A stretch of DNA of 64,000 nucleotides from Zygnema circumcarinatum SAG 698-1b (GCA_037447605.1 CM074814.1:1674001-1738000); one strand, 5' to 3'. Counted from the stretch's first letter, positions 4,952 to 45,533 are shown. Notes: a model not told the origin generated them from the sequence alone. Numbers and translations: made by a program.

Positions 4952-7461
4952 TCAAGGGAGAGCCTTGTTCTCATTGATCGCTTTTGCTACTTCTGAAGAT
5001 GCTGTATTGTCTGCATACCGCTTGTAAGTGGGCCGCAGCTTTTCCTTATCTTGAGTGGTTGCTTTCACACTTGGAACATCAACTACAGCTGCCGCCCACT
5101 GGTTGAATCTGAGATACTCGGAAGTGTCAGGCATCGTGAACCCGCGGTAGAACGCAAGAATGTCATGTCTTATAATCCATGGCACCAGAGTGATGTCCTG
5201 CATTTCAAAAAACGTATGTGTGAGAAACACGAATTGAGCAACTATATAGACTCTTGGGAGCAGTTTTTGAAATTTTGAGAAGCGAGCAAGCAGCAAACAG
5301 GCAATAAAGAAAGGGTAGTGATATTTCCACCCCTTTTTTGGATCCAAACACCCCTTCCCGGCCGGGTAGATTTCAAAAGGGATTAAAAACAGAAAATGCT
5401 TTTTTCACACCTTTTTGGAATCGATACCCACCTTCTTCCGTCGGCTGATTTTATTTGCTAACCAAGGAAAATGATACCCCGTCACCGCATTTTGGAATAC
5501 TGTATCCCGCCTCCCTGAAATTTTTTTTTGAGGGAAAGAAATATCTGCCTGCCCGAATCCGCTCGGAGCGGAAGATCCGTCCCCCACGAGATCGTACGCG
5601 GGTGTCCGTCCTTCACACGTGTGTGTCAATCGCATCTGTCAATTTCCCTCGCAGATCGCACCACTGCAGATCACCGTTCGATCTGCAGCCGGGCTCGATC
5701 TTAGCGAATGGAAAGCGCCCACGAGTCCCGTCAAAGCCAAACCGCACGTGCGAGTGCGCGCGTCCCTCGGCCCGAGATCTCGTCATTGTTACCTCCCAGC
5801 CAATCAACATCTTCCACGTGTTACATTTTGACGTGGAAAATTTTGATTGGTTTAAGATCTTAATGTACGAAATTTTGGGTTCCTCAAGTTGCGACCGTAC
5901 GACATTTGTACGGACATACTTTTGAGAGGACTTTGGCGGGATACGTGGGCCCGTGCCATGCGCTGTGACCGAGCCCGGCTGCAGATCAAATAGTGATCTG
6001 CCGTGTGGCGATCTGCGAGGGAATCGACGGCGGCGATTGACCGCACGCGTGAAAAAAATCAGGTAGGCGGGATATTCAAATTGGGTGACGGGTTATCATT
6101 TTCCTTGTTTCGCAGAAATAAAATCTGCCGATGGAGGGTGGTATCGATTCCAAAAAGGTGTGAAAAAAGCATTTTCCGTTTTTAATCCTTTTTGAAACCT
6201 GCCCGGCCGGGAAGGGGTGTTTGGATCCAAAAAAGGGGTGGAAATATCACTACCCTAAAGAAATACTATGATGAACTGCCAGTCCGTTGTACACTCACAA
6301 TTTCTATGTCTTAGTTTGAACTGACTCCTACACAACTGAGCTCACCACCATGGAAAAGGTCGGCCCCATAAAGAATGGCCCCTGGCTGCTCAGTTTGGCC
6401 ATAGCCTCTGAGGGAGTTCGATAGGCCTCCAGCAAGTCTTTGCGAGCCTCCTCTTGCCCCTCCTTGTCCTGTCTCTGGAGATACCTGGCAATACCGAAGC
6501 AGCCAATACAACTGAATTTCAAGCATACTCAATTCCTTACATTCTGAATGTGCAGATCTGTAGCTAATGATTTGTCAGTTAGATGAAGCGTTTGCCAAAT
6601 AAATGTACAAATGCGGTTTGCTTCGTGAATGGGCTGCACATACTCTTCTTTGAATCAGAGGGACGAAAAAATGGAACGAGTCGGCCCTACAAATGCTCTT
6701 CACACATCGACGTTTGAAATTGAAAGGCGTGAATGGATGTTGGACACATTTTCTATTTGACCGAATTGACATCTTCACCTCTGGTCGACAATGCATGAGA
6801 AGAGTTGATGACTGCACAAGATAAAGCAGTAGTTCATGTAAAATCCTCCAGAAGGTTTTCTGAAGTGAGAATTTCTGAGCCTATCGTACCGACCCTCTCC
6901 CCTGGCCGGCTGAATCAAACAACATGTAGGGGAGTGTTTTAAGAGGAGTCACGAAACTCCAAGGGTGCATATTGACACACCTGTAAAAGGTAGGCACCAC
7001 CTTCCTGTTGACGAAGTCGCACCAAATTCGAGCAACCGCTCGATCATAGGGACCTCTGGGAAGCAGATGGCGGGCTCCATCGCCATTGGTGAAGGCTTCG
7101 TCAATGTACTCCAAGAGCACCATGGACTCATAAACGGCCTTTCCGTCATGGTCCATGCAGGGCACCAGGCCGCGCGGATTCACTGCCATGAGCTCCGGCG
7201 GTTTGGCATACGGATCAACCTCAATGTACTGCACACAGTCAGCAAACTCAATCAGAGAGCGTTTTCTCGTGATCGAGCACCCGTCTCGTTCTGACTTATA
7301 TCTTAGTCGAAACAATTTCAGGAAAGTAAATCAATCACCTGGTATTCAATCCCCTTTTCCTCTGCAGCAATCCATGCTCTCTGAGCGAACGGGCAGAACC
7401 ACGCAGAAAACAGCTTCACGCCGCTCTTGGAGACGTCTACTCCATTCCTACATGTCGCCAT
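4952..7461 (-). CDS. Cysteinyl glutathione S-transferase (CPFA active site; omega-like), 4 exons
   Basis: Exon 1 7461-7339 MATCRNGVDVSKSGVKLFSAWFCPFAQRAWIAAEEKGIEYQ. Exon 2 7228-6981 YIEVDPYAKPPELMAVNPRGLVP...VYESMVLLEYIDE. Exon 3 6484-~6345 YLQRQDKEGQEEARKDLLEAY...PFFMGPTFSMV. Exon 4 ~5196-4952 DITLVPWIIR...YKRYADNTASSEVAKAINENKALP*. Confidence 0.9.
5313..6255. mobile_element. Non-autonomous TIR DNA transposon (Mutator-like), 943 bp, inside GST intron 3
   Basis: About 200 bp of imperfect terminal inverted repeats starting GGGTAGTGATATTTCCACCCC. Exact 8-bp flanking duplication TAAAGAAA at 5305-5312 and 6256-6263. No transposase ORF. Confidence 0.9.
5800..5850. promoter_or_regulatory. Inverted ERSE-type dyad (CCAAT-N9-CCACG / CGTGG-N9-ATTGG) inside the transposon
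   Basis: ccaat caacatctt ccacg (5800-5818); cgtgg aaaattttg attgg (5832-5850). The sequence is seen directly; function is inferred. Confidence 0.55.
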
Positions 7462-7815
7462 GGCTGCTGCTTCTCTTCAGCCCGACCACGTCTCCTGCAG
7501 CAGACGCCCTTGCAACGCGAGTCTCTCCTCTCCGGGGCCGCAAGAGAGGCTCCTCGGGAGGACTGAGAGGGCGCACGCCATGCTCGCAGGCGGGGAGGTC
7601 CGCCATGGCACGCGGCAGCTCTGCTTCGCGAACACATGGCGGGGGGCGCACGGCTTTGGGCTTGCCATGTGGCAAACCACAGCTAAGCGTTTGGTCATGG
7701 CATGCACCTGCATGGGTGCTGAGGGCCATTTAGGATTTGTAGGGGCTTAAGGTTTTTAGGGCGGGCGGCGAGTTGGGTATAGATAGGCAGGAGTGAGGAG
7801 GGGAAGGGGAAGTAC

Positions 7816-8158
7816 CATTGATCTCACGATGGCGGGGCCATCAAATGTACATGGACAAAATCAGCATGGGGAACCACGAGGAACTGGTCGCAAACAAGGA
7901 GTAAGTGGCTGGCGTTTGGGCAGCTTGGGTCGCTTGTTGTGCAAGGGACGCGCGTGGGGCCGGCGGTTTGTATGGAGGTTGCAGCCACACAAATCGTTCA
8001 CGGGACCTTCGCGACTGCTTCTAGGGAGGCCTGCGTTGTTGAGCTTCGGCTTCTCAGTTTTTTATTTTGTGCTTAGGTCCTTTGCGGCCAGTTCTTCGTG
8101 GTTCCCCATGCTGATTTTGTCATGTACATTTGATGGCCTCGCCATCGTGAGATCAATG
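7816..8158. mobile_element. MITE-like element, 343 bp, with ~78 bp TIRs
   Basis: The left end cattgatctcacgatggcggggccatcaaatgtacatggacaaaatcagcatggggaaccacg is the reverse complement of the right end with few mismatches. No TSD is visible. A homologous partial copy lies at 50465-52753. Confidence 0.75.
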
Positions 8159-8395
8159 AAGCAGCTCTTGCTCTTTGTTCAGGAGACCGCGTGTCATCTT
8201 GACGCGAATTAGGGTTGAGGGCGATGAAGGCGAGCAACACGACACTCATGTCAGGGTCGAGCCGTCATCGATTTCGATCCACTGCGGGCGGTCCTAGGTT
8301 AACCCGGCTTTGAGGTTTGGGAGCGCTCCGTTGATCCCGGTTCGTCTGTCCTACGTGGCGCCAGGCCGGGCGGGGCCAGTCTACCATTCCACCCG

Positions 8396-8537
8396 CCTCC
8401 CTCCCTTCCTCCCTTCCTCCCTTCCTCCCTTCCTCCCTTCCTTCCTCCCTCCCTCCCTCCTGGAGGCGGGCGTTCCTCTGCTCGGGGAGGACCGAGGCCA
8501 CAGGACCGGACCGGACCGGACCGGACCGGACCGGACC
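8396..8537. repeat. Microsatellites: (cctt/ccct)n, then (ggacc)7 at 8503-8537
   Basis: Read directly from the sequence. Confidence 0.9.
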
Positions 8538-8638
8538 CGCGCTCTTCGAACAAGAAGGGAGGAGAGGCGGAAACAAAAATGCTCCCAAGGAGTCGAGTCA
8601 AAAAAAGAAGTCGAACTCAAGTCGACTCGGAGGAATGG

Positions 8639-8805
8639 CCGCGTGCATGGCCCCATGCCCCATGCCACGGCCGCGTGCATGGCTCCATGCCCCATGCCCC
8701 ATGCCATGGCCGCGTGCATGACCCCATGCCCCATGCCACGACCGCGTGCATGACCCCATGCCCCATGCCACGACCGCGTGCATGGCCCCATGCCCCATGA
8801 CATGG
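8639..8805. repeat. Minisatellite, five ~32-bp units (ccgcgtgcatgRccccatgccccatgccaYgR)
   Basis: Units start at about 8639, 8671 (39 bp, with an extra ccccatg), 8710, 8742 and 8774. Confidence 0.9.
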
Positions 8806-10387
8806 CCGCCCCCCGATCTGGCGGCGATTCATGGCCACTAAATCGGGCGGCCGGCCCTGCGCCACGCCGCTCTCCGCCCGGCCGCCCGCCCGCCCGCGTC
8901 CCGCCGCGGCACGGCACGGCACGCGCCTGCCAGCCAGCCAGGCGCGGCTCGGCCGACCCGCCGGCCGCGCCGCCCCCAGAGGACCAGGGAGGGAGGGGCC
9001 CGCCACTTGCCGGAATGGCGGGCGGGCGGGCGGGCGGGCGGGTCCGGCCACGTGGCGCGCCCTCGCGCGTCCCTGCGTGTCCCGGCGCATCCCGCCGCCG
9101 CTGTTGTCGGCGCTCGTCCAACCTTCCGCTTTGAAGGACGCGTCTGTCCGTACTATTCGTACCGTACCCATTTAAGATTTTTACCGTACAGTAAGTACGG
9201 GCTGCGCAAAGGAAGCCTAACCGTGTCGCGACACGCCCGCATGGCGCCAGAATCCGCATTTAGATCTCCTCGAATCTCGCACCGTCCGTATGGCCGCGCA
9301 CGGGCTCGCTGTCGGCGCCGCCGGCCTCTGATTGGCTCCGCCATTTGCTGACGCGCGGAACCCGGCACCGGCCAGCCCCTGCCGGCCGGTCAGGCGGGCC
9401 CGTTCGTACATGGAGGCACGCGGCCCACGCAGAGTCATATCCGCCCGCGCCTCCGACAAAACGGCCGCCCGGATATTTGCCACGCTTTAAAAGCGCACGA
9501 CCACGCCCGCCCGGCGGATCCGCACGTGTGACGTCGGCGGATTGGCGTCGCCTGGGGACGGCGCGATGCCGCGTACCGGTGAGGACGGCCACGTGGCAGG
9601 CCGGCTAGCGCGAAATGGGTTCGTCCGGGCGCCTTCAAGCGAGGGCAGGGTCGCGCCACGTGGCAGGCGGCCAGGGCGGGCCGGGGGGGGGGGGCGCTGC
9701 CCAGAGACCGCGGCAGGCCCCCGTTCACACGACGACGCTCGGCAGCACGGAACGGCAGGCACGTTGAACGGTGACGAACTTCGGTTCTATGTTCCAGGCG
9801 CCTTAACTGATGCGGCCGTACCGTTCCATGCACCCAGGCGGCACGCCAGTTGGCAGGGGAGTCATGGCGGCCGGGGGGAGGGAGGGTGGCAGGACGGGGG
9901 AGGGGGGAGGGGGGAGAGGGAGATGGAGAGGGAGAGGGAGAGAGGGAGAGAGGGAGAGGGAGATGGGGAGGAAAGGTGAGGGTGGAGGGAGGGAGGGTAG
10001 TGGAGGCCGAGCAGGCAGCACCAAGGCGGCTGTGATGGGACAGAAGATGGGAAAGGAGGGCGCGCTGCAGAGGATGGATCTGGAAGGAGGAGGGAGGTGC
10101 AGATAGGAGCAGGAAGGCGAAAGGGTGTTGGAATGGAGAGGGTAGGGAGTGACAACAGGAATAGGCAGGCGAGGGCGGAAGAGTACAGGTGAGCTTGATG
10201 CCTTGGCAATTGCAGGGGAAGGGCCGCAATGTAGCTGAAATATGCACTAGCAGTGGTCGAACTCTAGGGCTTGGCAGAAGGGTGCTGATCCGGTCCTCTG
10301 CAGGCTAGCTCCGGCGCAGATTAGGGCAGAGCCTATGCAATTGGGAGAGGATTAGCCAAGGGCTGCTACGGAGAGGGTGATTGTGTG

Positions 10388-10418
<31 letters not shown>

Positions 10419-10420
10419 TT

Positions 10421-14702: not shown

Positions 14703-15442
14703 ATAGTCGCCACGCAAAGGTGTCCATGATGACGCAAAAGCGTAGCGGGACACGCGACGCTGTTTATGTTTTACGGTAACAGAACTGCGCCGACATGTCC
14801 GACAGCAACCAGGACACGTGGCGCGCCAGGAGTGGGGATGGCGGTATTTATTAATTATTTCTTTCAGGGGGGGCTGCTACTTTCACACCTTTGGTGGTTC
14901 TTTTTTAATTTTAGAATAAAAAGGGTTAAAAACCAGTGAATCCCATTTTATTTTGAGTGCGTCTTCTTGAGCAGTTCGCGCAACGCAACAGGAGAGGTCA
15001 GGAAGGGTTTTGCTCCTCCACCATATTTCTTCGCCTAGTCTTATGCAGCGTGCTCCTTCCAGCAATATTGAACAGCATGGTGAGCTCATGCAGAGCCTAC
15101 TGGACAGCTTGGAAGTTCTAACGATTGCCATCTAATAGTTCGGAACCATCGGATGCCAATGGTTGCCAACCATTGGGCGTTCAACCATTGCCATTCAATG
15201 GTTGTCCAATGGTTGCCGATCCACCTGTGAAAGGTTGACCCGCCCTCGTAGGGCTTGTCAAGATTTGGAAAAAATCCTTCGGGTTTCGATTCAGGAAGGA
15301 GGTTTTTCCGAAATCAGTACGATTTTGTCCGGTTATAATAAAACATTCATAAGAAACGTACGAGTTTCGATATTATTTAGCAAGGTGCGGCATAAAATAT
15401 TTCAAGATTGACGGGTTGAAGCGGATTTTGGATGCCAATAAA

Positions 15443-15493
15443 CCAATCATCGCAAGCCATGTGTAAATTTTTACACGTGGCATACCGCATTGG
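15443..15493. promoter_or_regulatory. Inverted ERSE-type dyad, degenerate
   Basis: ccaat catcgcaag ccatg (CpG to TpG variant); cgtgg cataccgc attgg (N8). Confidence 0.4.
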
Positions 15494-15504
15494 CTATTGC
15501 TTTA

Positions 15505-16204
15505 GGGGGCGACTATTTACAGTGTACGTTTTCTGAATGTAGTGTACGTTTTCGGGGGGCAGCAAAAAAATCCTTTTTTTGGCTGCCCGGCGCTGTTTCA
15601 TACTTTTCAGAATAGATACAGACCTTTTTTCGTCGGATGTACGGATAGTGATTTGAAATGTACGAAGCGCGCGCGTCTACAAGGTATAAGGGCGCAACAC
15701 GTGGAGCGACATGATTGGTCGCGGCAACATGTGACGTGACAAGTATGTTTGGGACCGTGACGTGACGAAACGAGACGCGACAAAAGTGGAGTCCGCGGAC
15801 GGCAGTCGGAAATGGCGGGGATTAAAACTGACAGAAAAAGATAGGGCACATAACGTAGCGTGTTTCAGGAAAAATCTGTCAGTTTTTTTCCCGCCATTTC
15901 CGACTGCCGTCCGCGGATTCCACTTTTGTCGCGTCTCGTTTCGTCACGTCACGGTCCCAAACATACTTGTCACGTCATATGTTGCCGCGACCAATCATGT
16001 CGCTCCACGTGTTGCGCCCTTATACCTTGTAGACGCGCGCGCTTCGTACATTTCAAATCACTATCCGTACATCCGACGAAAAAAGGTCTGTATCTATTCT
16101 GAAAAGTATGAAACAGCGCCGGGCAGCCAAAAAAAGGATTTTTTTGCTGCCCCCCGAAAACGTACACTACATTCAGAAAACGTACACTGTAAATAGTCGC
16201 CCCC
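15505..16204. mobile_element. Foldback (Mutator-like) element, 700 bp, almost entirely inverted repeat
   Basis: Arms ~15505-15835 and ~15875-16204 are near-perfect reverse complements around a 39-bp spacer. Termini are GGGGGCGACT / AGTCGCCCCC. 8-bp TSD TTGCTTTA at 15497-15504 and 16205-16212. Confidence 0.92.
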
Positions 16205-16422: not shown

Positions 16423-17868
16423 TTGCCCATGGGGGACGCGAAGAGGAGGGCGAGCGGTCGATCCATGGCAGAGGGAGGAGCCATGGCGGGCCTCCCTCTC
16501 CCTCTCCTCACCGACATCTTTTCTCGCTCCACGGACGGCGATGTGCAGGAACTCATCTGCCTCTCCACCGTCTGCAAGGCCTTCATGGCGGGGGTTCGCG
16601 AGGTGGAAATTTTGAAAATTGATGAGAGAACCTGCTCATTGATCTATGAAAGGCATCATTCTTCATCAATTGCAAAATCGAAGCTTAAAAGGATTATCAA
16701 CATTGCTCCAAAGGTGCAGCGCTTCGCCTGTCATGGCGACATTGATCCTACTATTTTTTATTCATGGGCAAGCAAAGTGGGAAAAACGCTTCGATCTTTA
16801 CGCTTCTTATCTGTGACTGAGTGGCACATTATTAATCATTTTCTCGTGCTGTTCAGAGTGTTGGAAGAGCTCATAGTCGAAGTTTTCGTACCCAGGGACA
16901 GTAGTCAATTCCCTTTTTATGGTATAAACTCTATTAAATCCTTGAAATTGACAGTACACCAAGAAAGAAGGGCTCCGCGAACCTTCGGTACTTTGAGCCA
17001 ATTTCTTGGCCTGTTTCCCAATGTCGAATATGCGGAGTTGGCTTTTGTCATGTACAGGACATCACGCATAGTTGTTCAGCACCAGAATTTGATCGGTTTG
17101 AAGATAACGATTACACAGCCATTTGGCAGCTATCTCGAACTCAGTGTTCCTACTCTTGAATTTTTTTCTTTCAAGGGTAGGCTCGAGACTTTGGTGGTTA
17201 TTGAGGACATGCGGAGTCTTAAGATGGTCGACATTGATGGAGCAGCAGTGCCAACAATTCCTGGAAAACTCGATGCTAAACACTATGTGTTTGGTCCTTG
17301 CTTTTGCCGGAACTTATTAGGAGAATTCCTCTCGAAGACCAACAGCACCAATGTGCAGTCTATAAGGTTCAACTTGCCTCTGACGGAGTTATCAATTTCT
17401 GAGAAGTTGAGGAATGTTGAGTTCCTGAATCTTACGCGACTCTACTTTAGGGACAACAGTTACGATGCGCCCGTCAACTTCTCTCTCTTGCGTCATTGGC
17501 TAACAATCTTCCCGGCGGTAAAAGAAATTGTATTAGTACGACTATGGGACGGTCGTTGGCGAGTTGAAAAAAGCATATTTGCGGATCGAGAAGCCTGTGA
17601 GAAACTCAATGTACCACTCCTCACCCTTTCTCTGTCTTATTCTCTTATCTTGTTTCTATATTCTTCGGTCATACATCATTTTTTTGGACTTGCTAGACTC
17701 TCCCATCTCTCTGTCCTTCTCTCTCCCTCTCGGTCTCTCCCTCGCTCTCTCGTGCTCTCTCTCACACTCTCCCACTCACACTGTTGCTTTCTCACTCCTC
17801 TCTTTCTCCTTCTCCCTCTCCCTCCCTCCTCCCCTCCGTGCCTCCCCTCCCTTCTCTTGCTCGTCTAA
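16423..17868 (+). CDS. F-box/LRR-like protein, apparently intronless
   Basis: N-terminal F-box-like LPLPLLTDIFSRSTDGDVQELICLSTVCKAF, followed by LxxLxL LRR-like motifs (LRSLRFLS, LEELIVE, IKSLKLT, LETLVVI). The last ~90 codons run through a CT-rich tract and may not be real. Confidence 0.7.
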   Translation: MPMGDAKRRASGRSMAEGGAMAGLPLPLLTDIFSRSTDGDVQELICLSTVCKAFMAGVREVEILKIDERTCSLIYERHHSSSIAKSKLKRIINIAPKVQRFACHGDIDPTIFYSWASKVGKTLRSLRFLSVTEWHIINHFLVLFRVLEELIVEVFVPRDSSQFPFYGINSIKSLKLTVHQERRAPRTFGTLSQFLGLFPNVEYAELAFVMYRTSRIVVQHQNLIGLKITITQPFGSYLELSVPTLEFFSFKGRLETLVVIEDMRSLKMVDIDGAAVPTIPGKLDAKHYVFGPCFCRNLLGEFLSKTNSTNVQSIRFNLPLTELSISEKLRNVEFLNLTRLYFRDNSYDAPVNFSLLRHWLTIFPAVKEIVLVRLWDGRWRVEKSIFADREACEKLNVPLLTLSLSYSLILFLYSSVIHHFFGLARLSHLSVLLSPSRSLPRSLVLSLTLSHSHCCFLTPLFLLLPLPPSSPPCLPSLLLLV

Positions 17869-30500: not shown

Positions 30501-30609
30501 CAACGATTTTGTAATGCGGATAGTTCCGCACAAGCCGGTTCGCCACATGGCCGGCGATAAAGCCCGCAGCGCCCGTGATGAGAATCGTTTTCGGGACGTA
30601 GTCAGCCAT
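27537..30609 (-). CDS. RHM1: Trifunctional UDP-glucose 4,6-dehydratase / UDP-4-keto-6-deoxyglucose 3,5-epimerase / 4-reductase (UDP-rhamnose synthase)
   Basis: MADYVPKTILITGAAGFIA...HFAAQTHVDNSFGNSFEF...TNPYSATKAGAE...TTRGNNVYGP. Second domain KFLIYGRTGWIGGLLGK...KPTHVFNAAGVTGRPNVDWCESHK. Ends SLIKYVFEPNSKVPKKV*. Confidence 0.97.
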
Positions 30610-30732
30610 GGCTGGACCCTCTCTCTCTCCCCTCCTGCCTCCTGCTCCGCCTCTGGCTGCACCAAATGACCCTGTCAAGAGAGGCAGCGGAAGTCAACAC
30701 CACACTCTCAAGGTACACTTGTCAAACGAAAA

Positions 30733-30786
30733 CCAATCACCAATTGCCACGTGTAAGCACTGTCTGACATGGCAGGTTCACATTGG
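30733..30786. promoter_or_regulatory. Inverted ERSE-type dyad ~125 bp upstream of the RHM ATG
   Basis: ccaat caccaattg ccacg (30733-30751); catgg caggttcac attgg (30768-30786, CpG-decayed half). Confidence 0.55.
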
Positions 30787-31413
30787 TCCGATTCTGCACA
30801 GGTGGAGTCCCTCCACTCCCGCATGCCTGCAGTTCCGCGGGCAGACAAAACACTTTTCTCGGGCAGCACTGGCACAGTTCACAGTTCCGCTGCAGGCTTT
30901 CAGCCAATGTCTACAGGCCACGTACTCAAGACAGCAGTTTTCATCTCATAAAACTCGCAGCTTTTTGGAGACGTTGCGAAACTGAACAAGCCGAGCCATG
31001 GAAGTCGACCCCAACCAAAAGAGAGGCGGTGCCGTCCGCCCGCCGTGTACATATCGTCGTACTGTACTGTACTTGTACTGTCCGTAGTGTCCGTACGATT
31101 CGTAATGCACAGAGTTATGGTACTGTATCTCGCTTCCCCCCCAGAGGATCCGGCCGGTAGTAGTCCGTCCGTCGATATCGACCGTCGATCTTGGCCGAAG
31201 CTAGATCGACGGCGGAGGATCCTTGCCTCGCTGGGCGCCATATGCGGAGTGCCGTTAGCGACTTGGGAGTTTGCGCCCGCCAGGGCCGTACGGCACGAAT
31301 GCCGTACAGTACTGTACCGTACTGAAACGTACGATACGCTGGACTTAGCGCTCCGTGCACACCCTGCCAATTGCGCACGTCAGACCGAAAATTGGTACTG
31401 ACCTCGAAAATCA

Positions 31414-31463
31414 CCAATGGCTATTCGCCACGTCATGACCATTGACGTGGCGTTCCCTATTGG
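31414..31463. promoter_or_regulatory. Inverted ERSE-type dyad
   Basis: ccaat ggctattcg ccacg (31414-31432); cgtgg cgttccct attgg (31446-31463, N8). Confidence 0.5.
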
Positions 31464-31916
31464 ACCGCCGTTGGGTCCTTTTTTTTCAGCTTATTTAGCT
31501 GGACGAAAGGAGAAAGAAATGAGTACCGTACCAAACCGTACGGCGAGGCATGCTGTAGCTTTCACACACTCATAGCCCCAAGCCATGCCATGCCATGCCA
31601 TGCCATGCCAGTCCAGACCTTGCTAAAAAGGCGCTACAATACTCCCCAAGTTCTCAAATGTGACTCGCTTGGCCTTCGTTACATAATGCAACCCTTGGAA
31701 CACAGACAGGTGTTTTCTTGCCTGCTATTGCTTGTGCCGCAGAAAGGGCGTCCGACTGGGGGAGACAAAAAGGTTCAGACCTACTTGTGACAGAGAGCAC
31801 GATAAAAAGGCAACTTCCACTGCTGCCCAGCGGAGCAGGAGTTGCAAACCAGGGTTGACGAATGCAGGCGCAATGCCTTTTAGCTTTACATCAAACTCAA
31901 CCGAATTGAGCAGCAC

Positions 31917-34900
31917 CTACGCGGTGCTGACTTCCTGTAAACCTATTTCAAACAAGACGAGCAAATCGTAGCCACGCCTCTTAAATAGCAGCAAAGCTTT
32001 CCTACTCTCCTTGTACAGCTCCCTTGCGAACAGATCGGAGTGCACCCGCAACCACCTACCACCTGCAGTAACCTGCAGGACTACCCTGCTCCTATCTTTC
32101 TTCATGACTTCCACTCCTCATCGAAGGGGAATCCCAACTCTAACAGTCGGCATATTCTCTGAAACTGTTGGTTGTTCCCTCTTGTTGGCTGCCGGGCCAT
32201 CACACGCTGCGCTTTGGCCCACTGCGCCAACTTGGCAGCGCCGCAATGGCGGCCAACATCACAGTGGCCATGCTCCTTCTGAAAGGCAGCAAGAGCATGA
32301 AAGCTTTCTTCCCACCGAGCCTCCTGCATGTCCAATACAACTCCCATTTCCAGCAGTCGACTCTGCACCACATTCCCCCTCTCAAGGTCAGGGCACCGTC
32401 TGATGGCAAGTTGAGGTCTTTCATGGTCCTGCTTTGAAGGTATTTGGGCTTGCAAGGAGTGGAAGATTGAAGGATAAATTAAAGTGTACGAGACTATGTA
32501 GGATAGCTAACAGCCAAGGCAGACATCAGCATCAACTTAAACCGTTTCAATGCCAAAAACATAGGGTTGTGGTTATCGTATTTCCCTTGTGTAGTAGCCC
32601 TGCGGCTCATTGGGATTCTATGTAAACTCCTATAACTTGAGCAGCTGTGTTTTGGCCCAGCAAGTGTTTGAAAAAGTGAAGGGTATGAAACGTGCTTTGC
32701 GGATGGGCGGTAATCGAGACTTGTAGAGGTCCATGCGCTGAAGCTGCAGCCATTGCCCCAAGGCCTCCCTCAGTGCCACGTGGCAGTGTCCATGTTCCTT
32801 CTTCCAGTTTGCCAGCTCAGCAAACCGTTTCTCCCATTGCTCCTCCTCTGCCAATGCCTGCCTCTGCCAATGAGAAGAATGCAAAAGTTGCTCAGCCAAG
32901 CAATGCTCAACCTCAAGAAAGCAATACGAAGAATGAATGGATCAGTTCATCAATTGAACAGCCGCTATCTTCCTTAGTAGCAGTCTCATCATAAAGAGAA
33001 AGGATTTGCATCTGCATATGTCAGCTCGGACTTCAACTATATAAGGAGCCAAAAGGGAATACCTTTGCCACAATGGCTGAAACCGCTTTTAGCCGCCTCT
33101 CAATCTCCTTCCGAGGCAGCTCCTGCATTTCACGAGCAGAGCAGCCAAGGAGCTTCAAACCCATACAAGATTGCAGATTTCAAATAGCAGTAAATGTCAC
33201 CAACTCGAACTCAAAAGCTATACTTCCTGTGGGAGTGACACTGCTCCACGAAACTACCGTTTCACAGTGGAAAGAGAGAACGATAGTGAGTGAGAGAGCG
33301 AGAGAGAAGGAGAGAGAGAGAGAGAGAGAAACTAGCCTGAGGCACATTGCAGTCCGCGTGGTGAGGGTCCCACGCCACAGCGCACGAACATTCCCAGTCA
33401 GGTCCTCCTCTTTCAGTAAGAGGGGCTCTGCCACACCACAAACACAATCAACATAACAGGGACCAATCAACTCCAACGATATCTTACTTCAAAAACGAAT
33501 TACCAAGATAGCTGTTATCACAACATGTCTTCGCATGCAGGAGTGCAGACAGAAGAGTGACAGGAAATTCCGTGCATACCTCCTCCATTTCCCACACTCC
33601 GTGGTTTTTCTGGCAACCTTTCCACTGGGCAGCATATCTCCAGCCTCATACAAAGCTCGAGTACATTGCAACCACTTCTCAGGGGTCCCCTCCGGCAGCG
33701 ATGTTGCAGGGAGCCACCCCACAGGCGACTCGTTCTGAAGCGCAAGAACAACACAAACTCAGAAAGAACACTTGAACAACGTACTTCAAATAGATGTAGC
33801 TACAGATGAATTCAAATCCCACTTACTTTCCACAGGTATGGATGGGACCTACATTAGCTATCCTTGCTTCTGCTTGTTGCCGCATTTGCTCCTTCACCTC
33901 TTCGCTGAGCTCCTCTTCGCTTCCAAAATGAGGACGTTCCCTGCGCATAAACATTCACAATCCAAATCACTTCGAAAGGCCACATAGAAAGCTCTAAAGT
34001 GTAGCTATGAATTGACATCCAACAGGAATGCAAAAGAAACACGGGACATGTCTTACTTATCAGGCTCATCATCATATGGCTCTCCTCTCCATTCCGGAAC
34101 ATCTGCTTGAAAATTTGGCCCCACACGCACTCTCCCTTGAAACGAGCAATTTCCTTGAAAAAGCCACTGCTCCTTCCCCCCTTGTGCTGATACAATGGGC
34201 CGGTTCCGCCATTTCATCCGCTCTCTACATTCATCTTGAAGCCTTTGTGTCTCTATGTTCTCCGTTCCAGAATCTGTTCTGTTTCCATCAGTGGGTACTA
34301 CAAATGCAGTGCCCTCTTCCTCTCTTTGTATCTCGCAGTCAGGGCAAAGCCACTCGTCCACTCGAGGGGGGGAATTGAGCTTAGGGGTCAAACAGCCCAT
34401 ATGGACAGCACAATCACACAAATCACAAAGGAGAGTAGAATTTGAGTTTTCCAGTTCTCCACATATATTACACTTTTGTGAGGCTTCCCCCCCGTCCCCA
34501 ACGGTCCCTAAAAAAGAAACTGCAGGTCTTGCAGTTTCAGCTCCGCCTTGACTCCTATCTTCAGAATTTGCATCCCACGATTGTAGCAGTTGCACAAGCA
34601 TTTCATCATTCTCGAATTCATCAGAATCATCCTCTCGATGCCCATTCTCATTCGTTATCGCTTCCAACTTATCATCCTCCGCCATGCTCTCATTGTCCTC
34701 CGCAATGGTCTCACCATCACTATGATCCCGCCCTCTTTTCCTCCCATGCATCCGCGATTTTGGATTTTCTTTCACGCAATTGCTTTCAGCAACATTTTGC
34801 TGATCATTTAGAGCCTCTCTACCGTCGTTTCTGCTTGGAGTGAGATCCCTCCCATCTTCAGCCGCTTTCCCGGATACCTTCGGAGTAGGATTTACATCAA

Positions 34901-36940
34901 TAATGGATGAGTCATGAATTGAACCTTGTGCATGTTGTGAGGGTGAAGGAGAGGGAGTCGATTGGTCGCACGTGCCCTTTCTGTCCTTACTGCAATGAAT
35001 GATACCCAAAGACCTATTGGCGGACCTCGTCAAGTATTTGACAGCCTTTGCTGGCCTGTTTTCTGCTCCATTTGAATTATCTGCAAACATGCAATTCCAA
35101 GCTGATGTGAAATTCATGCTGTGTCCATATGACTCGAAGAAAGCTGTGAAAGTTTCCCTGCATTGCATGCCCCAAGCATCTGCTGAACTAGAATGGGTCA
35201 GTCAAAGACTCATTCAATGTATGTCAAATTGCCCAATCGCAGGGCACACCACTAAACGACAAAAAGTTGATAGCAACTACAGCCACAATAGAAAGGCACC
35301 TGAAGGGAGTTCAGGGGACACTCGCATAGGTTCTGAAATTTCTTCAATAGTTTCGGACCGCTTTGGAGAATCTCCTCGCTGTGGTTGGAGATGCGAAGAA
35401 GTTGCCAAATCCTGACAAGGAGTCAAGAGAGAGATGGAGATTACTTGGGTTGAATAAGTTCACAAACATGGAACTCATGTATCGACTGCTGTTTTTTCAC
35501 TTAAGAATCAGTAAGCAGCAACTCATGCCCCTTAATGCTAACCAGCAGTCCCATTTTGACTGCTGGTTACAGAATAAGCAGAGGTGACACTGTTCATCTT
35601 CACTGGCTAAGTCCTTATAAACCCTAATAACGCTAAAAAACCGTGGAAAACCTCAGGACCTAGAACAATCGAGAATTATCAAACTCAAAATGTACCATTT
35701 TGGAAACTACAACGACCCGACGAACTTGGGCTTAAACCATAACTAGGTGTTCCAACGGTGAGGCATTAAAGCATGCAAAAAAGAAGAGTTGTGAAGAGTC
35801 ACTGACGCACAAGCAACAACACAAGTTGTCACCGACTGACAAAAAATAGAGACCTGATTCAAGACCTTCTTAGGCCTAGTGATTCGCGAAAACCCTAAAA
35901 CTGATAGCCGCCGCAGAGCCGTTGACATGTGATAAAATGAACGCAAACATGTCAGAACTATACTCTTTTCATATCACAAGTAGACTTGCCGCAGACCAAA
36001 CATTGGTGTCGGAAATGGAATAGAGATGGGGGCTATGCGAGCACAGCGGGATGAAAAATCTTTCCAACTTTCTTGGCCACGAGACATATACATGACAAGT
36101 AGCTGCTTACCTTGAGAAGCACAGCTTGCTGCTCATGTTTTTTTCGAGCATTGGGCCTGTTAAAGGGTACGCCACAACTTCGCAGCATCAGTGTGCGTCA
36201 ATTAAGTTAATTAAGCGCAGAAATCATTCTTAAAGACTGGTACACAAAGAAAATCGCATTAGAGAAGCCTGATTCTGCCGTGCTTAGAGGCTGTAAGCGA
36301 ATCAGCAAACGGTTTGGTATGAAGAAATAAATGAAATGGCAAAAGATCACACCATTCCCTGTTGATTTTGCTAGTTGGGGTCATTAAACACATTCGCACG
36401 TGGAGATTTTTGCCATTGACAACGGGTAGATAGCCGCACTTTGAATGCAATCCAATCGCGCTAAGCACAAATTTAGTATCATCAAGACTTCTTTAGGAAT
36501 CCATGCATGAAATTCGATAAAACCGAAACATATCTCCTATTAAACCGAAAATTGAATAGTAGCATGACAAACAATTGAACCACGCACGCACACCTTCGCT
36601 CCTGTGAATGCATGCTGAACGTGTAAATGGCTGTAGCAATGACAAAACTTTTGACCACGTGTGAAATGCAATCACTTTCAAGCCCATGCCCTTCGCTTTT
36701 CAATGGACTCGTGCTGCTCCAAGTATACAGATGATATGCAGCGCTGTACATCACTGCGTAGGGACAACTTCCTAAGTCTTTGTTGACCTTAACAGAGCAA
36801 AGGGATGACGAAAATTACCTCCGTTTGGACTCTCGAAAAGTTGTAGGTCCCAGCATGCTCTTCAGCTTTGCCTGCGCTCTCCGAGCAGACGGAGAGGGCC
36901 GCTTCGGCTTCGCTTGCGCCATGTTCTGCTCAGCAACCAT
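31917..36940 (-). CDS. PHD finger - ELM2 - Cys/Trp zinc-finger protein (At2g19260-like) followed by helicase-associated (HA, PF03457-like) repeats
   Basis: PHD: KCNICGELENSNSTLLCDLCDCAVHMGCLTPKL...WLCPDC. ELM2: RVRVGPNFQADVPEW. Cys/Trp finger: KWLQC...CGKWRRAPL...WECSCAVAWDPHHADCNVPQELP. HA repeats: QWEKRFAELANWKKEHGHCHV...LGQWLQLQR and RWEESFHALAAFQKEHGHCDV...LAQWAKAQR...RLLELGF. The 5' exons and the final stop (32102 or 31917) are uncertain. Confidence 0.75.
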
Positions 36941-37547
36941 GGCGACCACTCATGGCAGAAAGGATGCCTGCTCAGAGAGAGAGAGATGGTTTGCTGGAGG
37001 AGATGGCTGAGCTAAGGAAGAAAGCTCTGTAAAGCAAGCACTGCAGGGCCAAGGCAGACATGCACAATCTCATGGTTCAAACAAATTTGCATTTTTGGGT
37101 TTGGGAGGTTTGGTAACTTACCGAATGCAACGAAATGTCGATTTCGAGTCACTTACTACAGAAAACATGCGCCTCTTGTATGAAAAAACAGCCTCAAGAA
37201 CTGAACAATGTGTACCAAAGCTCTGAGAAGGAGCCCAAGAGTAGGCCTGAAGTTAGGGTTAGGTCCAGCCTTTTTTTCCTGTTGCCGTGTTCACAAGTGG
37301 GCCTTGGCCTTGGCTTTGGCTACTTCAAAAATTGAAGGCCAAGGTGTCACGTAGCGTAGTCGTGATTTCTTTAACTGTAACTGCGCACCGCGCCGTAAAG
37401 TTACAGGTGCTAGCGCAATTACGGTCCGACATGGAACGTGCGAATCGAACGGTAGATAAGTGACATAAACGTTCTGTTTCACGGGGGGGAGGGCCCACAT
37501 GGAGACCTATTCGTACGGTCAGCTAGCGTTTTTGGCCACGACCAACC

Positions 37548-38280
37548 AACCATACGGCTGGTTGCCAACCATTGGCGGCGGATCGAAACAACCATTCGAA
37601 TAGTTCGGAGGATGCCAATGGTTGGCGACCAATCGAATGGTTCGGTACCAGTAGGGGGTGTCAGACTTAAAAATTGTTCGTAAGTTTGAGACCAGAACGA
37701 GTACTTCGGTGACATCGCAATCCTGGTGCGGCGGAGTACTTACAAAACTTTTTTGTTCGTAAGATTTCGTTAAGTCTGACACCCCCTAGTGAATGCAAAT
37801 GCCTCCCAACAATTCAACTGGTTGCCAACCATTGGCACCGGACACTAACAACCATTCGAATGGTTCGGTACCAGTGGATGCAAATGCTTCCCAACCATTC
37901 GACTGGTTGCCAGCCATTTGCGCCGGACTGAAACAACCATATTCGAATGGTTCGGAACCAGTAGATTCCAAATTCGGTACCAGTGGATGCAAATGCTTGC
38001 CAGCCATTCGACTGGTTGCCAACCACTTGACGTCCAACCATTGCCATCCAATGATTGTCCATTGGTTGCCGATCCAATGGTCCGACCTGTGATGTATTGT
38101 GCCAATATTGCACAGATCGGACCATACCATTGACAATGGTTGCGAGTGATTGGAACGGTTGCAAATTGATTCGCTACTCGGGCAACCATTGCCAATGGTG
38201 CCAGCCATTGAGTTCAATGGTTGTGAACCATTGCCGTCGGACCGAAACAAGCATTGGACGTCCCACCATTGCCATCCAAC
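37548..38280. repeat. Degenerate minisatellite of ~75-bp units built from AACCATT/AATGGTT palindromes
   Basis: The unit tggttcggtaccagtggatgcaaatgcttcccaaccattcgactggttgcca... recurs 3-4 times. A perfect 16-bp palindrome aaccattcgaatggtt lies at ~37850-37865. A related segment lies at 15135-15230. Confidence 0.8.
37653..37787. mobile_element. 135-bp MITE nested in the palindromic array
   Basis: Perfect 18-bp TIR agggggtgtcagacttaa. 3-bp TSD AGT at 37650-37652 and 37788-37790. Removing the element restores the sister-unit sequence accagtgRatgc. Confidence 0.85.
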
Positions 38281-38392
38281 GGCCCCCTCGACTGCCGCAG
38301 CGCAGCCACGCCATGGCTAACCAGACCTGCCTCCGCAAGTCGCCGCACCAACTAACGGCCATCGCTAGCCAGCCATTCTAGTCAGTAGATCA

Positions 38393-38446
38393 CCAATGGT
38401 CACTCACCACGTGCCCACTTCTGCACACGTGGCATCATCCGATTGG
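38393..38446. promoter_or_regulatory. Inverted ERSE-type dyad, both halves perfect
   Basis: ccaat ggtcactca ccacg (38393-38411); cgtgg catcatccg attgg (38428-38446). Confidence 0.55.
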
Positions 38447-38571
38447 CAGATGCTCGCGCGGTTTTTCCTCTCCGGATTTCCCCTGCCTTGGTGCACGGCT
38501 GGCTGGCTGGCCCGCGCCCGGCCCGTGCTCGCTTCAGGGCGGGACTCAACCCTCCGGCAGGGAAGGTCCAG

Positions 38572-38625
38572 CCAATCATAAAATGTCACGTGTCCTAATT
38601 TGGAAACGTGGCAGGCTGTCATTGG
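38572..38625. promoter_or_regulatory. Inverted ERSE-type dyad ~190 bp upstream of the HCS ATG
   Basis: ccaat cataaaatgt cacg (CCAAT-N10-CACG, 38572-38590); cgtgg caggctgtc attgg (38607-38625). Confidence 0.55.
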
Positions 38626-38815
38626 GTGCAGTCGGTCCGTACAGCCATCAAATATTGGAGAACGACGACGGTTCGCGAGGGGAGACCCCGAAAGCGACGC
38701 GGAGCGAGCCAGGCCTTGGTCGAGCCGAGGGCGATCCATGGCCGAAATGGGGGGGGTGTAGGCACTGGGGTGGCAGGGAGGCACCGGGGCGCATTCCTTC
38801 GCGGCATTTCTATTC

Positions 38816-41433
38816 ATGGTTGATGCTCGCAAGGCGCTGCAGTGGTTGTCGCCGCTCCTTCGTAATACTGTCGTGCAGCCGCTTGGTTTCAGAACATACG
38901 CTGTAAACGTCGGGCGTACAGGGAGGAATTCTGTGCATTCTGCTGCTTATGATTGCTCTCTGAAGCGCAGAAGCAGAAGGATTGGCTATATATTTTTTCC
39001 AATGGATTCGGAAGGTGTGGCCTTGAAGCATGAAGCCTGCGTTGACGGGGGGCCGAAAGTGGAAGTTCTTGGAGTGAAGCAAGAGCAGTTGGGAAAGTCC
39101 TCTACTGAGCTGAAGCACGGCCACGAAGCACCAGGAGGTGGCGCTGTTGGCAAGATGGTCGATAATGGCGCCGCGGGTGGAAGCAGAACGGACTCTGGCG
39201 ATTTAGAAAAGGCAGCGAATGCACTGCTCTTGGTGGCGAGAACTGCAGACGAACTTGCATTGGCTGAAAATCTATCTCTCGCAGGAACACAGCTGCGAGA
39301 AGGTTTTCGACTCATTTGTTGTGTGAATGGAGAAGGCAGCACGGAGCTGGAGCTGAACCGTTGCGAATTTCAGGGCTCTGAATTTTTTCAGCAGTTAAAA
39401 ACAAGCACGCTGGGAGGAGTGTTAGTGCTTTCTCCCCGCCTGCAATCAACGCAGACACTGCTGTCCCAGTAAGTTGCCTTCTTTGCGCACATTGAGTAGC
39501 AATTCAATTAACAGTCTCATAAACTACTCTGACGAGGGGCGAGCCGAAGTAGGGAAGAGTCATCTAGATAGCTTGGTACTTATACGGCTGTCTGATGCCT
39601 TGCCATCCTCACTGGAGCTGGGAGGGCTCAGAAATTTTAAAGCATTTCCTGTTGGGACGGTGTGCGTTGCAGACGTACAGTACAAGGGTCGTGGTGAGTG
39701 CAGTTCCAAGTGTGCTAACTTTTAGAGTTGCTTTTTTTTTTTTTTTTAAATGAACTTCTGTTCCTTTGTTTGTAGGCTCAAAATTGTCAATAAGCTGTGG
39801 AACCCAAATTGTTTTTTCAACAGTTCCCGTTAGTGCTGTATTCGGCGACTCAGTTGGCTCCATAGTGTATGCTCCAGGGCGTGGCGGGAACACATGGGAA
39901 AGCCCTAAGGGCTGCCTTATGTTCTCAATGACTTTACAAGAAAGTAATGGCCGTACTCTGCCCTTTCTTCAGTACGTGGTCTGCTTGGCAGTGGTTAAAG
40001 CTGTGGAAGAGGTCGCCCGTGAGAGACCTATGGTGAGCTAATCCCGCTCCTTTGCTCATAAACATTTGAAATCACTCGCGGTCAAAACTTCAACAGCATG
40101 TCTACTTTGAAGTGCAAAATTGCACTACCATGCAATGCTCATTGCATCACTAGCCTTACTAGAAGCATTCCTCCATTGGGTTTCCAGGTGAAGCCAATGG
40201 ATGTACGTATTAAATGGCCCAATGACCTCTATGCCGGAGGAGTGAAGATTGGAGGAATCTTATGCACTTCCACTTACACAGCATCGGAGAAGTTGTTCAA
40301 TGTTGTTGTTGGTAAGCAGCAGGCTCAAAGATCTTATCAAGTTTGTGTAACCTGTGCCGTTATGTGATCAAAGTGGATACAGGTTCACACACTAAAGGTT
40401 GCTAAAGGACATCTGAACAACTTAAGGTTGTATCTGGTGGCCTTCATTTTCAGGATGCGGCTTCAATGTGTCAAATGAGCAGCCTACTACATGCCTCAAC
40501 GCGTTGCTCGCAGCCAATCAGAGCCCAGGCTCACATGCGAGACCGGTCTCACGCGAAGAGCTTTTATCCGAAATTGTGAATCAGCTGGAGGTGCTCCATG
40601 ACCAGTTTGTCACGAATGGTAAGAATGAGTGGCACAGCTCTTCAACTTCTCGCTGGCAGTTTCTCGCTTTGGAGCAGTGCCTTTCCTGTAAACTTGTTCC
40701 TTGCTGAGAGGCCATTGGCGCTGAACAGGGTTTGACGATTTGCGTGAGGCGTACCTTCAGCGCTGGCTCCACACGTAAGACCAGCGAACTTTGGCGGAGA
40801 AAGAGTGGCATACTAATAAGTGTCGTATGGTGAAGAACAGATGCTGTGTACAACAGGTAGCAGCAGGCTGGTATCTTTTGCAATCCTTAAGCTCAATTTC
40901 ATAGGTTTCCGCAATTGACTTTTGAGTTCTATCCTTCATCGCTCAGAAACTTGAATCCCATGGTTGATTGCTATTAAGAACAACAGCAAACTATGGCAGG
41001 TACATGTCGTTAACCAAATGTGTCGGAATCATGTGGGCCAGAGGGCAACGTGTGGAGTTGGAGGAAGCCAATGGGGAAAGGATTTGGTTGACTGTGGAGG
41101 TGAGCTTAAAGACAATCAGGATTTTCCCATGGCTTTGGCCCATTTGTGTGTTAATCTCTTGAGGAGGTCCTGAAGATCAGGTTGTGGTGTGCAGGGACTA
41201 ACTTCCGATGGATATCTGTTGGCTGTTGATGGTCAAGGAGAGAAGTTTGAGCTCCATCCTGATGGCAACAGGTCTGCAGCTGCCCATATCTTTTCCCTCC
41301 TGTCATTATCCGACTCTGCTACCTTGGAGTAGGAGGGGCTTCATAACTGACACTGTTTGCCTCTGATTGGTATATGCGCAGCTTGGACTTCTTCAAAGGT
41401 TTGGTGAGAAAGAAGCTGACAGCAGCTGAATGA
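38816..41433 (+). CDS. HCS1: Holocarboxylase synthetase / biotin--protein ligase
   Basis: VGTVCVADVQYKGRG|RGGNTWESPKGCLMFS, LPFLQYVVCLAVV, MDVRIKWPNDLYAGGVKIGGILCTS, NVSNEQPTTCLN, GLTSDGYLLAVD...FELHPDGN|SLDFFKGLVRKK. Confidence 0.95.
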
Positions 41434-42170
41434 GGCTTCATGTTGATGGTGGACCGAAGCATCTCCGCGAGCGGTCGTTTGTATGTTTAGTAGCCGTGTG
41501 CAGTGCAGACCAGATGTGTGTTCTGCTAATTGTAAAGGAGGATTTGGAGCTATTTTAGGGAAACAGCGAGAAGCTCCTGCGGCTCCCACTGCTGATAATA
41601 GAGCTTGAAACGGTTCTAGTTATAACAAGTGTAGCTTAAATCGGAGAACACTTTTGGCCTTGGGAGGCGTCTGATCTGCCCACTACTGTTGGCTGCAGTG
41701 ATTTTGTTCAGTTGAAGCGTCAATTTCAGGCAAAGTTGTATTTCAGAAGTAAACTCCTATAAACTAATCTATGGAGGGTTGCGGGAGGGATTAGGATTCG
41801 CTAGAAGAGAGGAACCTGTGGAAGGAATTATATGTGTGCGAGAACATTAAACTAGTTATGATTATTCCGTTAAGAATTTCACATTCCAATAGTAAGCCTT
41901 GTAACATTTATAGAACAGTACCATGGGATATGTCTCCTACTCCAACCTCGAACGTTACAGTGTCAATTAAAGGAGACACGGTAAACCCAATCAACAGTTT
42001 TTGACAATTTTGAAGAAAAACACAATTTCTATGTACAAATCTCGCCAGTAATTTATGAATTTCCGTAACTCTCACCTCTTACAGTTATTGGAGAAACACC
42101 GGTCTTTTAGGCTATAACCAATACTCCAGAACCAACAGGATGAATGATTTCATTCAGCGGAAGTTTCTTA

Positions 42171-44332: not shown

Positions 44333-44872
44333 GGCTCCCCCCTATGGCGCAGCCATGGCTGCCGCTCCCACGAGGGGGGGGGGCTGCCGATATGTCTCAA
44401 GGACCTAGGGGGCCTAGCTCCTAGGGGCCTAGGGGCCTCGTGGTTAGTGATCCGTTTGTATCAAACGCGTGTATAATACCTGTACCACATTTTAAAAATA
44501 CAGTGTACTTTATATGTATTTAACGTCTTTTCTTTTCTTCGTTTTATTGTTAGTTAGATAGAGCTTGATTATTATAATAATTGAAGCTTCAAGCCGTAAG
44601 GCAGCTCTAGGATACCTTATGCTAGTCTCAAAATAGTTGTATTGAAAAATAGGTCTACAAGAGCAGTTTCAAGGGGGACGGTGATGATGGGACATGTGGT
44701 AGTGCTGCTACAGTGGCGCATCATGAGAAGGATAAGAGAAGAAAACCAGCAACAAAATTATGATCCTCCAGCAAGAAAAGTAGAATTAGCAGAAGGTGCA
44801 AAGGGTCTAGGGATTCACGTCACTTGCTAAACACTCAACACGTGTAAGTCGACCCGTACAATTTCGTACACT

Positions 44873-45290
44873 GTACAGTACAGTACAGTACAGTACAGTA
44901 CAGTACAGTACAGTACAGGGGGTCCTCGTCATATTTTCCACCTTGAACAGTGCGACACCAATAAATTCGCCCCGATTTTGCCGAAACCACCTTTTTGTAC
45001 GGTAACTTTATGTAAGCCGTACTATTCGTACTATCCGTATTATTCGTACTATTCGTACTATTCGTACTAGCTGTACTAGCCGTTACGGGCTAACGCAAAA
45101 CTTCACCTAATCTCCCCGCAAGTGCCGCCGTAAGAGGCGCTCGCTCTTCTCCCCTTCTTACTGGCTTCGATACGATACGATACGTCCAGATACGGTACTC
45201 TTCGTACTGGCCGTACTGGCCGTACCAATCGATACCGCACGATACGGTACGATATGACAGCAAAGCATACGATACGATACATACGGACAT
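44873..45290. repeat. GTAC-rich cluster: (gtaca)9 at 44873-44917, tattcgtac repeats, gatac repeats
   Basis: Read directly. Similar clusters occur at ~9150-9200, ~31045-31340, ~57735-57750 and ~58285-58340. Confidence 0.85.
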
Positions 45291-45481
45291 ACATGAACTC
45301 TAACATAATTCCGCTCGCCTATTGGCAACACGGACCTTCTATTTGCCAAAAACAGTATTTTCGCCCGGTATTTGCCGAAGGTGTATAGTACGGAACAATA
45401 CTCGTGGCCGACGGGACCTAGGGGCCTAAGGGGGCTAGGGGCCTTCGGGCCCTTCACGAACACCACTCGACCATCACTCGT

Positions 45482-45533
45482 CCAATGGCAATTCACCACG
45501 TGGTCAAAATTGCACGTGGCGGGCTATCATTGG
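45482..45533. promoter_or_regulatory. Inverted ERSE-type dyad between the divergent FIP1 and ATG13 genes, both halves perfect
   Basis: ccaat ggcaattca ccacg (45482-45500); cgtgg cgggctatc attgg (45515-45533). Confidence 0.55.

Follow-up and report, generated by a model that had tools for sequence, protein, structure and literature searches.

Our analysis of a 64,000-nucleotide stretch of the Zygnema circumcarinatum SAG 698-1b genome (GCA_037447605.1 CM074814.1:1674001-1738000; "the window" below means this whole stretch) shows seven copies of a symmetric element, here called the dyad, in which two half-sites of the form CCAAT-N9-CCACG face each other across a short gap (CCAAT-N9-CCACG, gap, CGTGG-N9-ATTGG). 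Judged from its sequence and its surroundings, the dyad is probably a lineage-specific general promoter module, each half of which would bind NF-Y and an ACGT-binding bZIP protein, and which would have been spread in part by transposons and would not belong to a stress regulon. An earlier note on this DNA had pointed out that the half-site has the exact geometry of ERSE-I (the response element for stress of the endoplasmic reticulum, or ER), which is indeed the case, and had suggested that its role might be broader than the unfolded protein response (UPR). The genes and open reading frames (ORFs) next to the dyads encode RHM, a biotin ligase, ATG13, a TMEM192-like protein and an F-box-like protein; these are not UPR genes, so the broader role is the better reading.

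The ERSE-I pattern is present in the window with both its spacing and its orientation fixed. There are 12 exact CCAAT-N9-CCACG matches on the two strands, while 100 dinucleotide-preserving shuffles gave a mean of 0.05 and none of them reached 12. The 11 matches counted previously by eye are all real, but that count was short by one, the site at 30904-30922 (plus strand) having been overlooked. When the spacing was varied from N0 to N24, N9 gave 12 matches, N8 gave three and every other spacing zero or one, and the flipped orientation, CCAAT-Nx-CGTGG, gave only zero or one at each spacing over the same range; thus, within the window, N9 is specific and the flipped form is essentially absent, in agreement with the fixed geometry first proposed. 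Two of the three N8 matches are dyad halves (15476-15493 and 31446-31463), in line with the two N8 halves already noted. Allowing one mismatch adds three degenerate dyad halves and five scattered matches, where 3.4 are expected by chance. The deviations had been ascribed mostly to CpG to TpG changes, and this holds for two of the three mismatched halves (the 15443 and 30786 halves); the remaining one, with TCACG at 38572, does not involve a CpG. Altogether there are 17 half-sites, 14 of them in dyads, and the site occurs about once per 5 kb.

All seven dyads were found where they had been reported (Table 1). A relaxed search of the window (up to three mismatches, N8-10, gap 8-22) returned the same seven loci and no further ones, and the same search found no dyads in 24 of 30 block-shuffled sequences. 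Within a dyad the centres of the ACGT cores are 15-18 bp apart and the outward CCAAT boxes 45-49 bp apart; the boxes thus have no constant helical phase, so that each half is rigid while the joint between the halves has slight play. The narrow 13-16 bp centre could reflect either close packing of two bZIP dimers or an origin by inverted duplication, and it does not choose between them. Neither the N9 spacers nor the central spacers have a common sequence between sites, as had been noticed before, and BLAST comparisons between the sites found no similarity beyond the boxes. Even the two N9 spacers of a single dyad agree by eye at only 1-4 of 9 positions, the palindromic dyad at 5800 excepted.

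Table 1. Dyads, single half-site, foldback elements, short-word arrays and introns in the window. Positions are counted from the first nucleotide of the window.
Feature	Position	Strand	Length	Structure	Setting
TE1	5313..6255		943 bp	non-coding foldback; outer arms 87-94% identical, inner arms 67%	
dyad 1	5800..5850		51 bp	N9/N9, gap 13	centre of TE1 inner palindrome
short-word array	15130-15223	both orientations		CCAATGGTTG / AACCATTGG	left of dyad 2
dyad 2	15443..15493		51 bp	N9/N8, gap 14; left half CCATG	TE2 inserted 11 bp to the right
TE2	15505..16204		700 bp	foldback; arms 98% identical	8-bp target-site duplication TTGCTTTA
RHM intron	29558-29885	minus			from RNA contigs
dyad 3	30733..30786		54 bp	N9/N9, gap 16; right half CATGG	124 bp upstream of RHM ATG
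single half-site	30904..30922	plus		CCAAT end toward RHM	RHM upstream region
dyad 4	31414..31463		50 bp	N9/N8, gap 13	805 bp upstream of RHM ATG
PHD-finger/ELM2 intron	32363-32695	minus			from RNA contigs
PHD-finger/ELM2 intron	32864-33062	minus			from RNA contigs
PHD-finger/ELM2 intron	33428-33579	minus			from RNA contigs
PHD-finger/ELM2 intron	33735-33852	minus			from RNA contigs
PHD-finger/ELM2 intron	33940-34055	minus			from RNA contigs
short-word array	37540..38270	both orientations		CCAATGGTTG / AACCATTGG	just left of dyads 5 and 6
dyad 5	38393..38446		54 bp	N9/N9, gap 16	370 bp upstream of ATG 38816
dyad 6	38572..38625		54 bp	N9/N9, gap 16; left half TCACG	191 bp upstream of ATG 38816
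dyad 7	45482..45533		52 bp	N9/N9, gap 14	600 bp upstream of ATG13 ATG

The bases around the two boxes suggest what kinds of protein might bind them. The consensus for NF-Y is RRCCAATSR. Each of the two bases 5' of CCAAT is a purine in 14 of the 17 half-sites, the base 3' of it is C or G in 16, and in 14 a purine follows. Agreement with the consensus at three or more of these flank positions, out of four, is seen in 16 of 17 half-sites versus 51 of the 150 other CCAAT sequences in the window (Fisher p=1.6e-6); because the foldback element TE2 contributes two identical copies, the number of independent half-sites is effectively 16. The CCAAT boxes carry NF-Y-type flanks, and NF-Y is a candidate binder. 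The second box is CCACGT in 14 of 17 half-sites, and it is followed by G in about 10 of them and by C, A or T in the remainder. The canonical E-box CACGTG is present in only about 10 of the 17 halves, the others having CACGTC, CACGTA, CACGTT or CATGT. Basic helix-loop-helix (bHLH) factors need CANNTG, so a fixed CCACGT with a free following base fits an asymmetric bZIP-type half-site better than a bHLH site or strict E-box, and the binder of the ACGT core is most likely a bZIP. No fixed TATA box or initiator was found at a set distance in the flanks outward of the CCAAT boxes.

All of the dyads except dyad 1 lie in unique DNA, 124-805 bp upstream of first ATGs (935 bp in the case of dyad 2). 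The observed/expected ratio of CpG in the dyads' 250-bp flanks is 0.79-1.47 (mean 1.11), compared with 0.73 in random 500-bp pieces of the window, and in this CpG richness the flanks resemble unmethylated promoter islands. CCGTAC/GTACGG words are also recurrent in the intergenic and promoter DNA (31090-31350, 44860-45300 and five of 15 dyad flanks), at no set distance from the dyads; SBP-box (SPL) proteins bind sites that have GTAC as their core.

The RHM locus has the densest group of sites. The RHM-like gene (Pfam epimerase/dehydratase) has its ATG at 30609 on the minus strand, and upstream of it are dyad 3, whose measured distance agrees with the approximately 125 bp given before, the single half-site at 295 bp, and dyad 4. 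RNA assemblies cover this region as contigs from four runs (X1-X4), which can be recognized as RNA because minus-strand GT..AG introns are present in them; on the plus strand the ends of the PHD-finger/ELM2 intron 32363-32695 read CT..GC and those of the other four CT..AC. The RHM contigs have high depth (770-2665), and RHM is strongly expressed in all four runs. The contigs also show a PHD-finger gene that shares the strand of RHM and has its 3' end near 31550-31650, so that dyad 4 is about 85-180 bp past that 3' end and the 940-bp spacer between the two genes contains two dyads and one single copy. PHD and RHM are thus in tandem on the minus strand, and the dyads at 30733 and 31414 are not between divergent genes. 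The contig region extends over 29300-35299 and includes a further exon upstream of 35083; a search of 35100-37600 for PHD 5' exons found nothing recognizable. The analysis did not confirm the divergent PHD/HCS pair postulated for this region; the PHD 5' exons are somewhere past 35299. A (CATGG)n microsatellite is present in the 3' region of the PHD gene, at about 31585-31620.

Exons and ORFs were taken separately throughout, and gene models are incomplete. The ORF that begins with the ATG at 38816 precedes a biotin-ligase (HCS) exon at 39766-40041, and the distance of about 190 bp previously assigned to the HCS ATG is the 191 bp from dyad 6 to the ATG of this upstream ORF. The ATG of ATG13 is at 46133 on the plus strand. 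Dyad 7 had been thought to lie between divergent FIP1 and ATG13 genes, but FIP1 was not found to its left, where the sole neighbour with Pfam support is a TMEM192-like ORF (ATG 44332, minus strand), 1150 bp off across a repeat-rich block. This block of about 1 kb (44396-45449), between the TMEM192-like ATG and dyad 7, has CCTAGGGG octamer repeats at both edges and is filled with micro- and minisatellites that contain GTAC, among them about 10 units of ACAGT, six of GTACTATTC and runs of GATAC. Possibly the block was inserted and moved dyad 7 off the TMEM192-like gene, from whose ATG the dyad would otherwise be about 110 bp away. To the right of dyad 2 is a 479-amino acid ORF (16429-17868, ATG 16429) with a CT-rich low-complexity tail and, near its N-terminus, a weak F-box-like match (E=0.0065, below Pfam's threshold). 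The 935 bp that now separate dyad 2 from this ATG would be 227 bp without TE2 and its duplication, and it was probably this ORF that dyad 2 served until TE2 inserted. Most ORFs of 90 amino acids or more outside RHM, PHD, HCS, TMEM192 and ATG13 matched no Pfam family.

Some of the copies are carried by transposable elements, as the earlier note had proposed. TE1 has dyad 1 at its centre, and TE2 has one half-site in each arm (15700-15718, minus strand, and 15991-16009, plus strand, both as first described) with the CCAAT boxes pointing inward. Both elements have terminal inverted repeats, and TE1 is flanked by a perfect 8-bp target-site duplication, TAAAGAAA; mobile DNA thus carries the module. 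The N9 spacers of dyad 1 agree at six of nine positions, consistent with the identity of the TE1 inner arms. We find no support for the label "Mutator-like" that these elements had been given: Mutator target-site duplications are typically 9-11 bp, those of TE1 and TE2 are 8 bp, and a scan of ORFs turned up no transposase domain. Their long inverted arms, 8-bp duplications and lack of coding capacity are like those of non-autonomous foldback or hAT-like elements. They differ from the usual members of that group in their cargo, which is a complete central dyad in TE1 and a half-site per arm in TE2. On the other hand, the copies and their spacers do not all align to one transposable element family. 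The alignment score of flanking inverted repeats is 297 at dyad 1 and 20-24, the level of random positions, at the other six, and only dyad 1 has both the terminal inverted repeats and the target-site duplication of a foldback element.

Two arrays of short CCAATGG-type words lie 220-320 bp left of a dyad (Table 1), and a 64-nt stretch of the 37540-38270 array is 89% identical to 15160-15223. The array at 37540-38270 is probably a decayed mobile-element relic. We also considered placing dyads 2 and 5, together with such an array, in one transposon family, but rejected this idea, since the intervening DNA is unalignable (score 20, null 26). Within the array left of dyad 5 sits a 133-bp miniature inverted-repeat element of the Stowaway/Tc1-mariner style (37654-37786), with ends GGGGGTGTCAGACTTAA and TA on both sides.

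The half-site is nearly absent from the loci sampled in other streptophytes. The ATG13 loci of Klebsormidium nitens, Marchantia polymorpha, Chara braunii and Calypogeia fissa and of one plant-like metagenome contig (one locus per species, about 109 kb without duplicates) contain one N9 match, where about 20 would be expected at the density of the window. This match, in Chara, reads CCACGG and has no ACGT core and no partner, and we treat it as chance rather than as a real site. The full dyad pattern has no match in JGI metagenome contigs and one perfect match in 596 Gb of prokaryote genomes, in an Acetobacteraceae metagenome-assembled genome (L004 1512-1564); the latter is at chance level and is useful only as a gauge of false positives. 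The abundance of the dyad and its half-site thus looks lineage-specific in this sample of one locus per species.

Several known systems resemble the algal dyad in part. ERSE-I, CCAAT-N9-CCACG (CCAAT-N10-CACG in its plant form, pERSE), is bound by NF-Y together with ATF6/XBP1 or bZIP28 (PMC3645738). The algal half has the identical pattern and spacing, an NF-Y-type CCAAT and an asymmetric CCACG(T), but unlike ERSE-I it occurs at about 200 times the chance frequency, beside non-UPR genes and mostly in head-to-head pairs, and the ATG13 loci sampled in other streptophytes hardly contain it. A pair of ERSEs in reversed orientations is known close to the transcription start of human CHOP (DDIT3), at -103 to -76 of its promoter (PMC6581940), which is thus similar in having two opposed ERSE-type elements. 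That pair spans only 28 bp in the promoter of one stress gene, so its two ERSEs must overlap, whereas the algal pair occupies 50-54 bp, has separate ACGT cores and is found at many unrelated genes. In the NF-Y/USF module, copies of which also occur within LTR12 and MLT1K repeats, an E-box lies 10 bp (10-12 bp) from CCAAT, and in mammalian "double CCAAT" platforms E-boxes lie between boxes whose distances peak at 19, 24-28, 35-37 and 43 bp (PMC4889920, PMC12065363). The algal sites share the 10 bp from CCAAT to CACGTG (this CCAAT-to-E-box spacing is present in all N9 halves), the copies in mobile elements and the E-box-like sites between two CCAATs; they differ in that about seven of the 17 half-sites are not CANNTG E-boxes and in that their CCAAT boxes are 45-49 bp apart and strictly inverted (no orientation is stated for the double CCAAT platforms). 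In the Block E enhancer of Arabidopsis FT a CCAAT-box/G-box core is essential (PMC13067676), but there the spacing is 2 bp and the core belongs to a single enhancer with no dyad. The earlier note named no precedent for the paired arrangement, and we found none in the papers searched on algae and charophytes and on paired or palindromic forms.

The structure of the dyad suggests how such a promoter module might work. Each half would be a rigid composite site, with the NF-Y histone-fold trimer on CCAAT and a bZIP on CCACGT, binding cooperatively. Two halves back to back would form a platform that is symmetric, close to the promoter and about 52 bp long, with its ACGT cores central and its CCAAT boxes outward, upstream of where unrelated genes of housekeeping type have their start codons. 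In the single copy upstream of RHM the CCAAT end is the one nearer the gene, and the half-sites of TE2 point inward; we infer from this that the CCAAT side is where transcription starts. The inward CCAAT ends are what would be expected if an autonomous element with an inward-reading promoter had supplied the TE2 arms from its 5' end. With starts on the CCAAT side, a dyad would fire outward both ways and be a compact two-way promoter core, so bidirectional firing is predicted for the dyads. A still more ambitious and decidedly tentative version is that the dyad is a portable bidirectional core promoter, scattered by foldback transposable elements whose arms then decay, and that it has become the dominant promoter architecture of the lineage. 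If so, it would be a plant-lineage counterpart of the LTR12-type NF-Y promoters, but symmetric and genome-wide.

A number of observations weigh against a general two-way promoter module. The evidence comes from 64 kb and five loci, and the orientation rule is drawn from two independent cases. Dyads at 30733 and 31414 are between tandem, not divergent, genes. Dyad 7 is far off for a core promoter element, its distance being 600 bp to the start codon of ATG13 and 1150 bp to that of the TMEM192-like ORF. The 45-49 bp between CCAAT boxes do not amount to complete turns of the helix, so that a dyad may be two adjacent independent units rather than the site of one complex. The RNA evidence consists of assembled contigs, from which neither transcription starts nor strand can be read; the upstream ends of the RHM contigs vary by run (30581, 31006, 31362 and 31504) and are unusable as starts. 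Run X1 has no transcript on the far side of the dyad at 30733, and the contigs of X2-X4 run through that dyad, so that no stable divergent transcripts are seen at this one locus examined. Given the lack of a far-side transcript in X1 and the two dyads between tandem genes, "symmetric, orientation-independent promoter module" is the safer wording.

Three other explanations of the dyads deserve consideration. They might be relics of one or a few families of foldback transposons, their arms decayed, their boxes surviving by chance or because the element itself needs them, and without any role for host genes; TE1 with its central dyad and 8-bp duplication, TE2 with half-sites in its arms, and the relic-like arrays adjoining dyads 2, 5 and 6 are all in keeping with this. 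Such an origin is nevertheless unlikely, as six of the seven dyads are without trace of flanking inverted repeats, the spacers and flanks are mutually unrelated, and the dyads are upstream of ORFs in CpG-rich DNA. In addition, the two N9 spacers of a dyad agree no better than chance, yet hardly any of the ten core bases has changed, and this speaks for selection acting on the boxes or for independent origins. One might also imagine a symmetric landing pad that has nothing to do with NF-Y or bZIP proteins, such as an insulator or boundary protein would use, an element for origin recognition, or a transposase target that draws insertions. The symmetry of the dyad, its narrow range of central spacings, the insertion of TE2 just 11 bp away and the lack of a fixed downstream core-promoter motif in the outward flanks could be explained in this way. 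We regard it as improbable, however, because the CCAAT flanks specifically fit the NF-Y consensus, the half-site is found singly too, and N9 is the spacing of two independently documented NF-Y composite modules (PMC3645738, PMC12065363); moreover, DNA transposons commonly insert near promoters and require no special site to do so.

The least probable of these explanations, in our opinion, is a true ER-stress element, on which NF-Y and a membrane-released bZIP28/bZIP17-type factor would induce transcription under protein-folding stress. The sequence match to ERSE-I is exact (PMC3645738), ATF6 and bZIP28 use CCACG half-sites like the second box, and a stress response of the autophagy gene ATG13 is plausible. 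But a UPR element would hardly be expected at about one site per 5 kb, and among the genes next to the dyads, where no association with UPR genes was found, RHM (nucleotide-sugar synthesis), the biotin ligase, the F-box-like ORF and ATG13 include no chaperone or ER-associated degradation gene. The strong expression of RHM in every RNA run (growth conditions are not on record) also speaks against stress induction.

The preferred explanation, a general promoter module built from NF-Y/bZIP half-sites, is of some interest, as promoter grammar is poorly known outside animals, yeast and flowering plants, and this alga is a close relative of land plants. A rigid composite site, mostly paired, here marks the starts of many unrelated genes. 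If the explanation is correct, it would constitute an unusually simple and testable promoter code, in which the NF-Y/bZIP partnership of the ER-stress element has been re-used for general purposes, and would clearly exemplify the carriage of complete promoter units by transposons; the dyad of about 52 bp would also be a candidate synthetic two-way promoter for this algal group.

Two further repeats in the window lie apart from the dyads. A GC-rich tandem repeat with a 32-bp period (CATGCCCCATGCC) occupies 8635-8833, within long GC-rich ORFs on both strands that match no Pfam family, and a perfect 112-bp direct repeat is present at 50629-50740 and 52578-52689, the two copies being 1949 bp apart.

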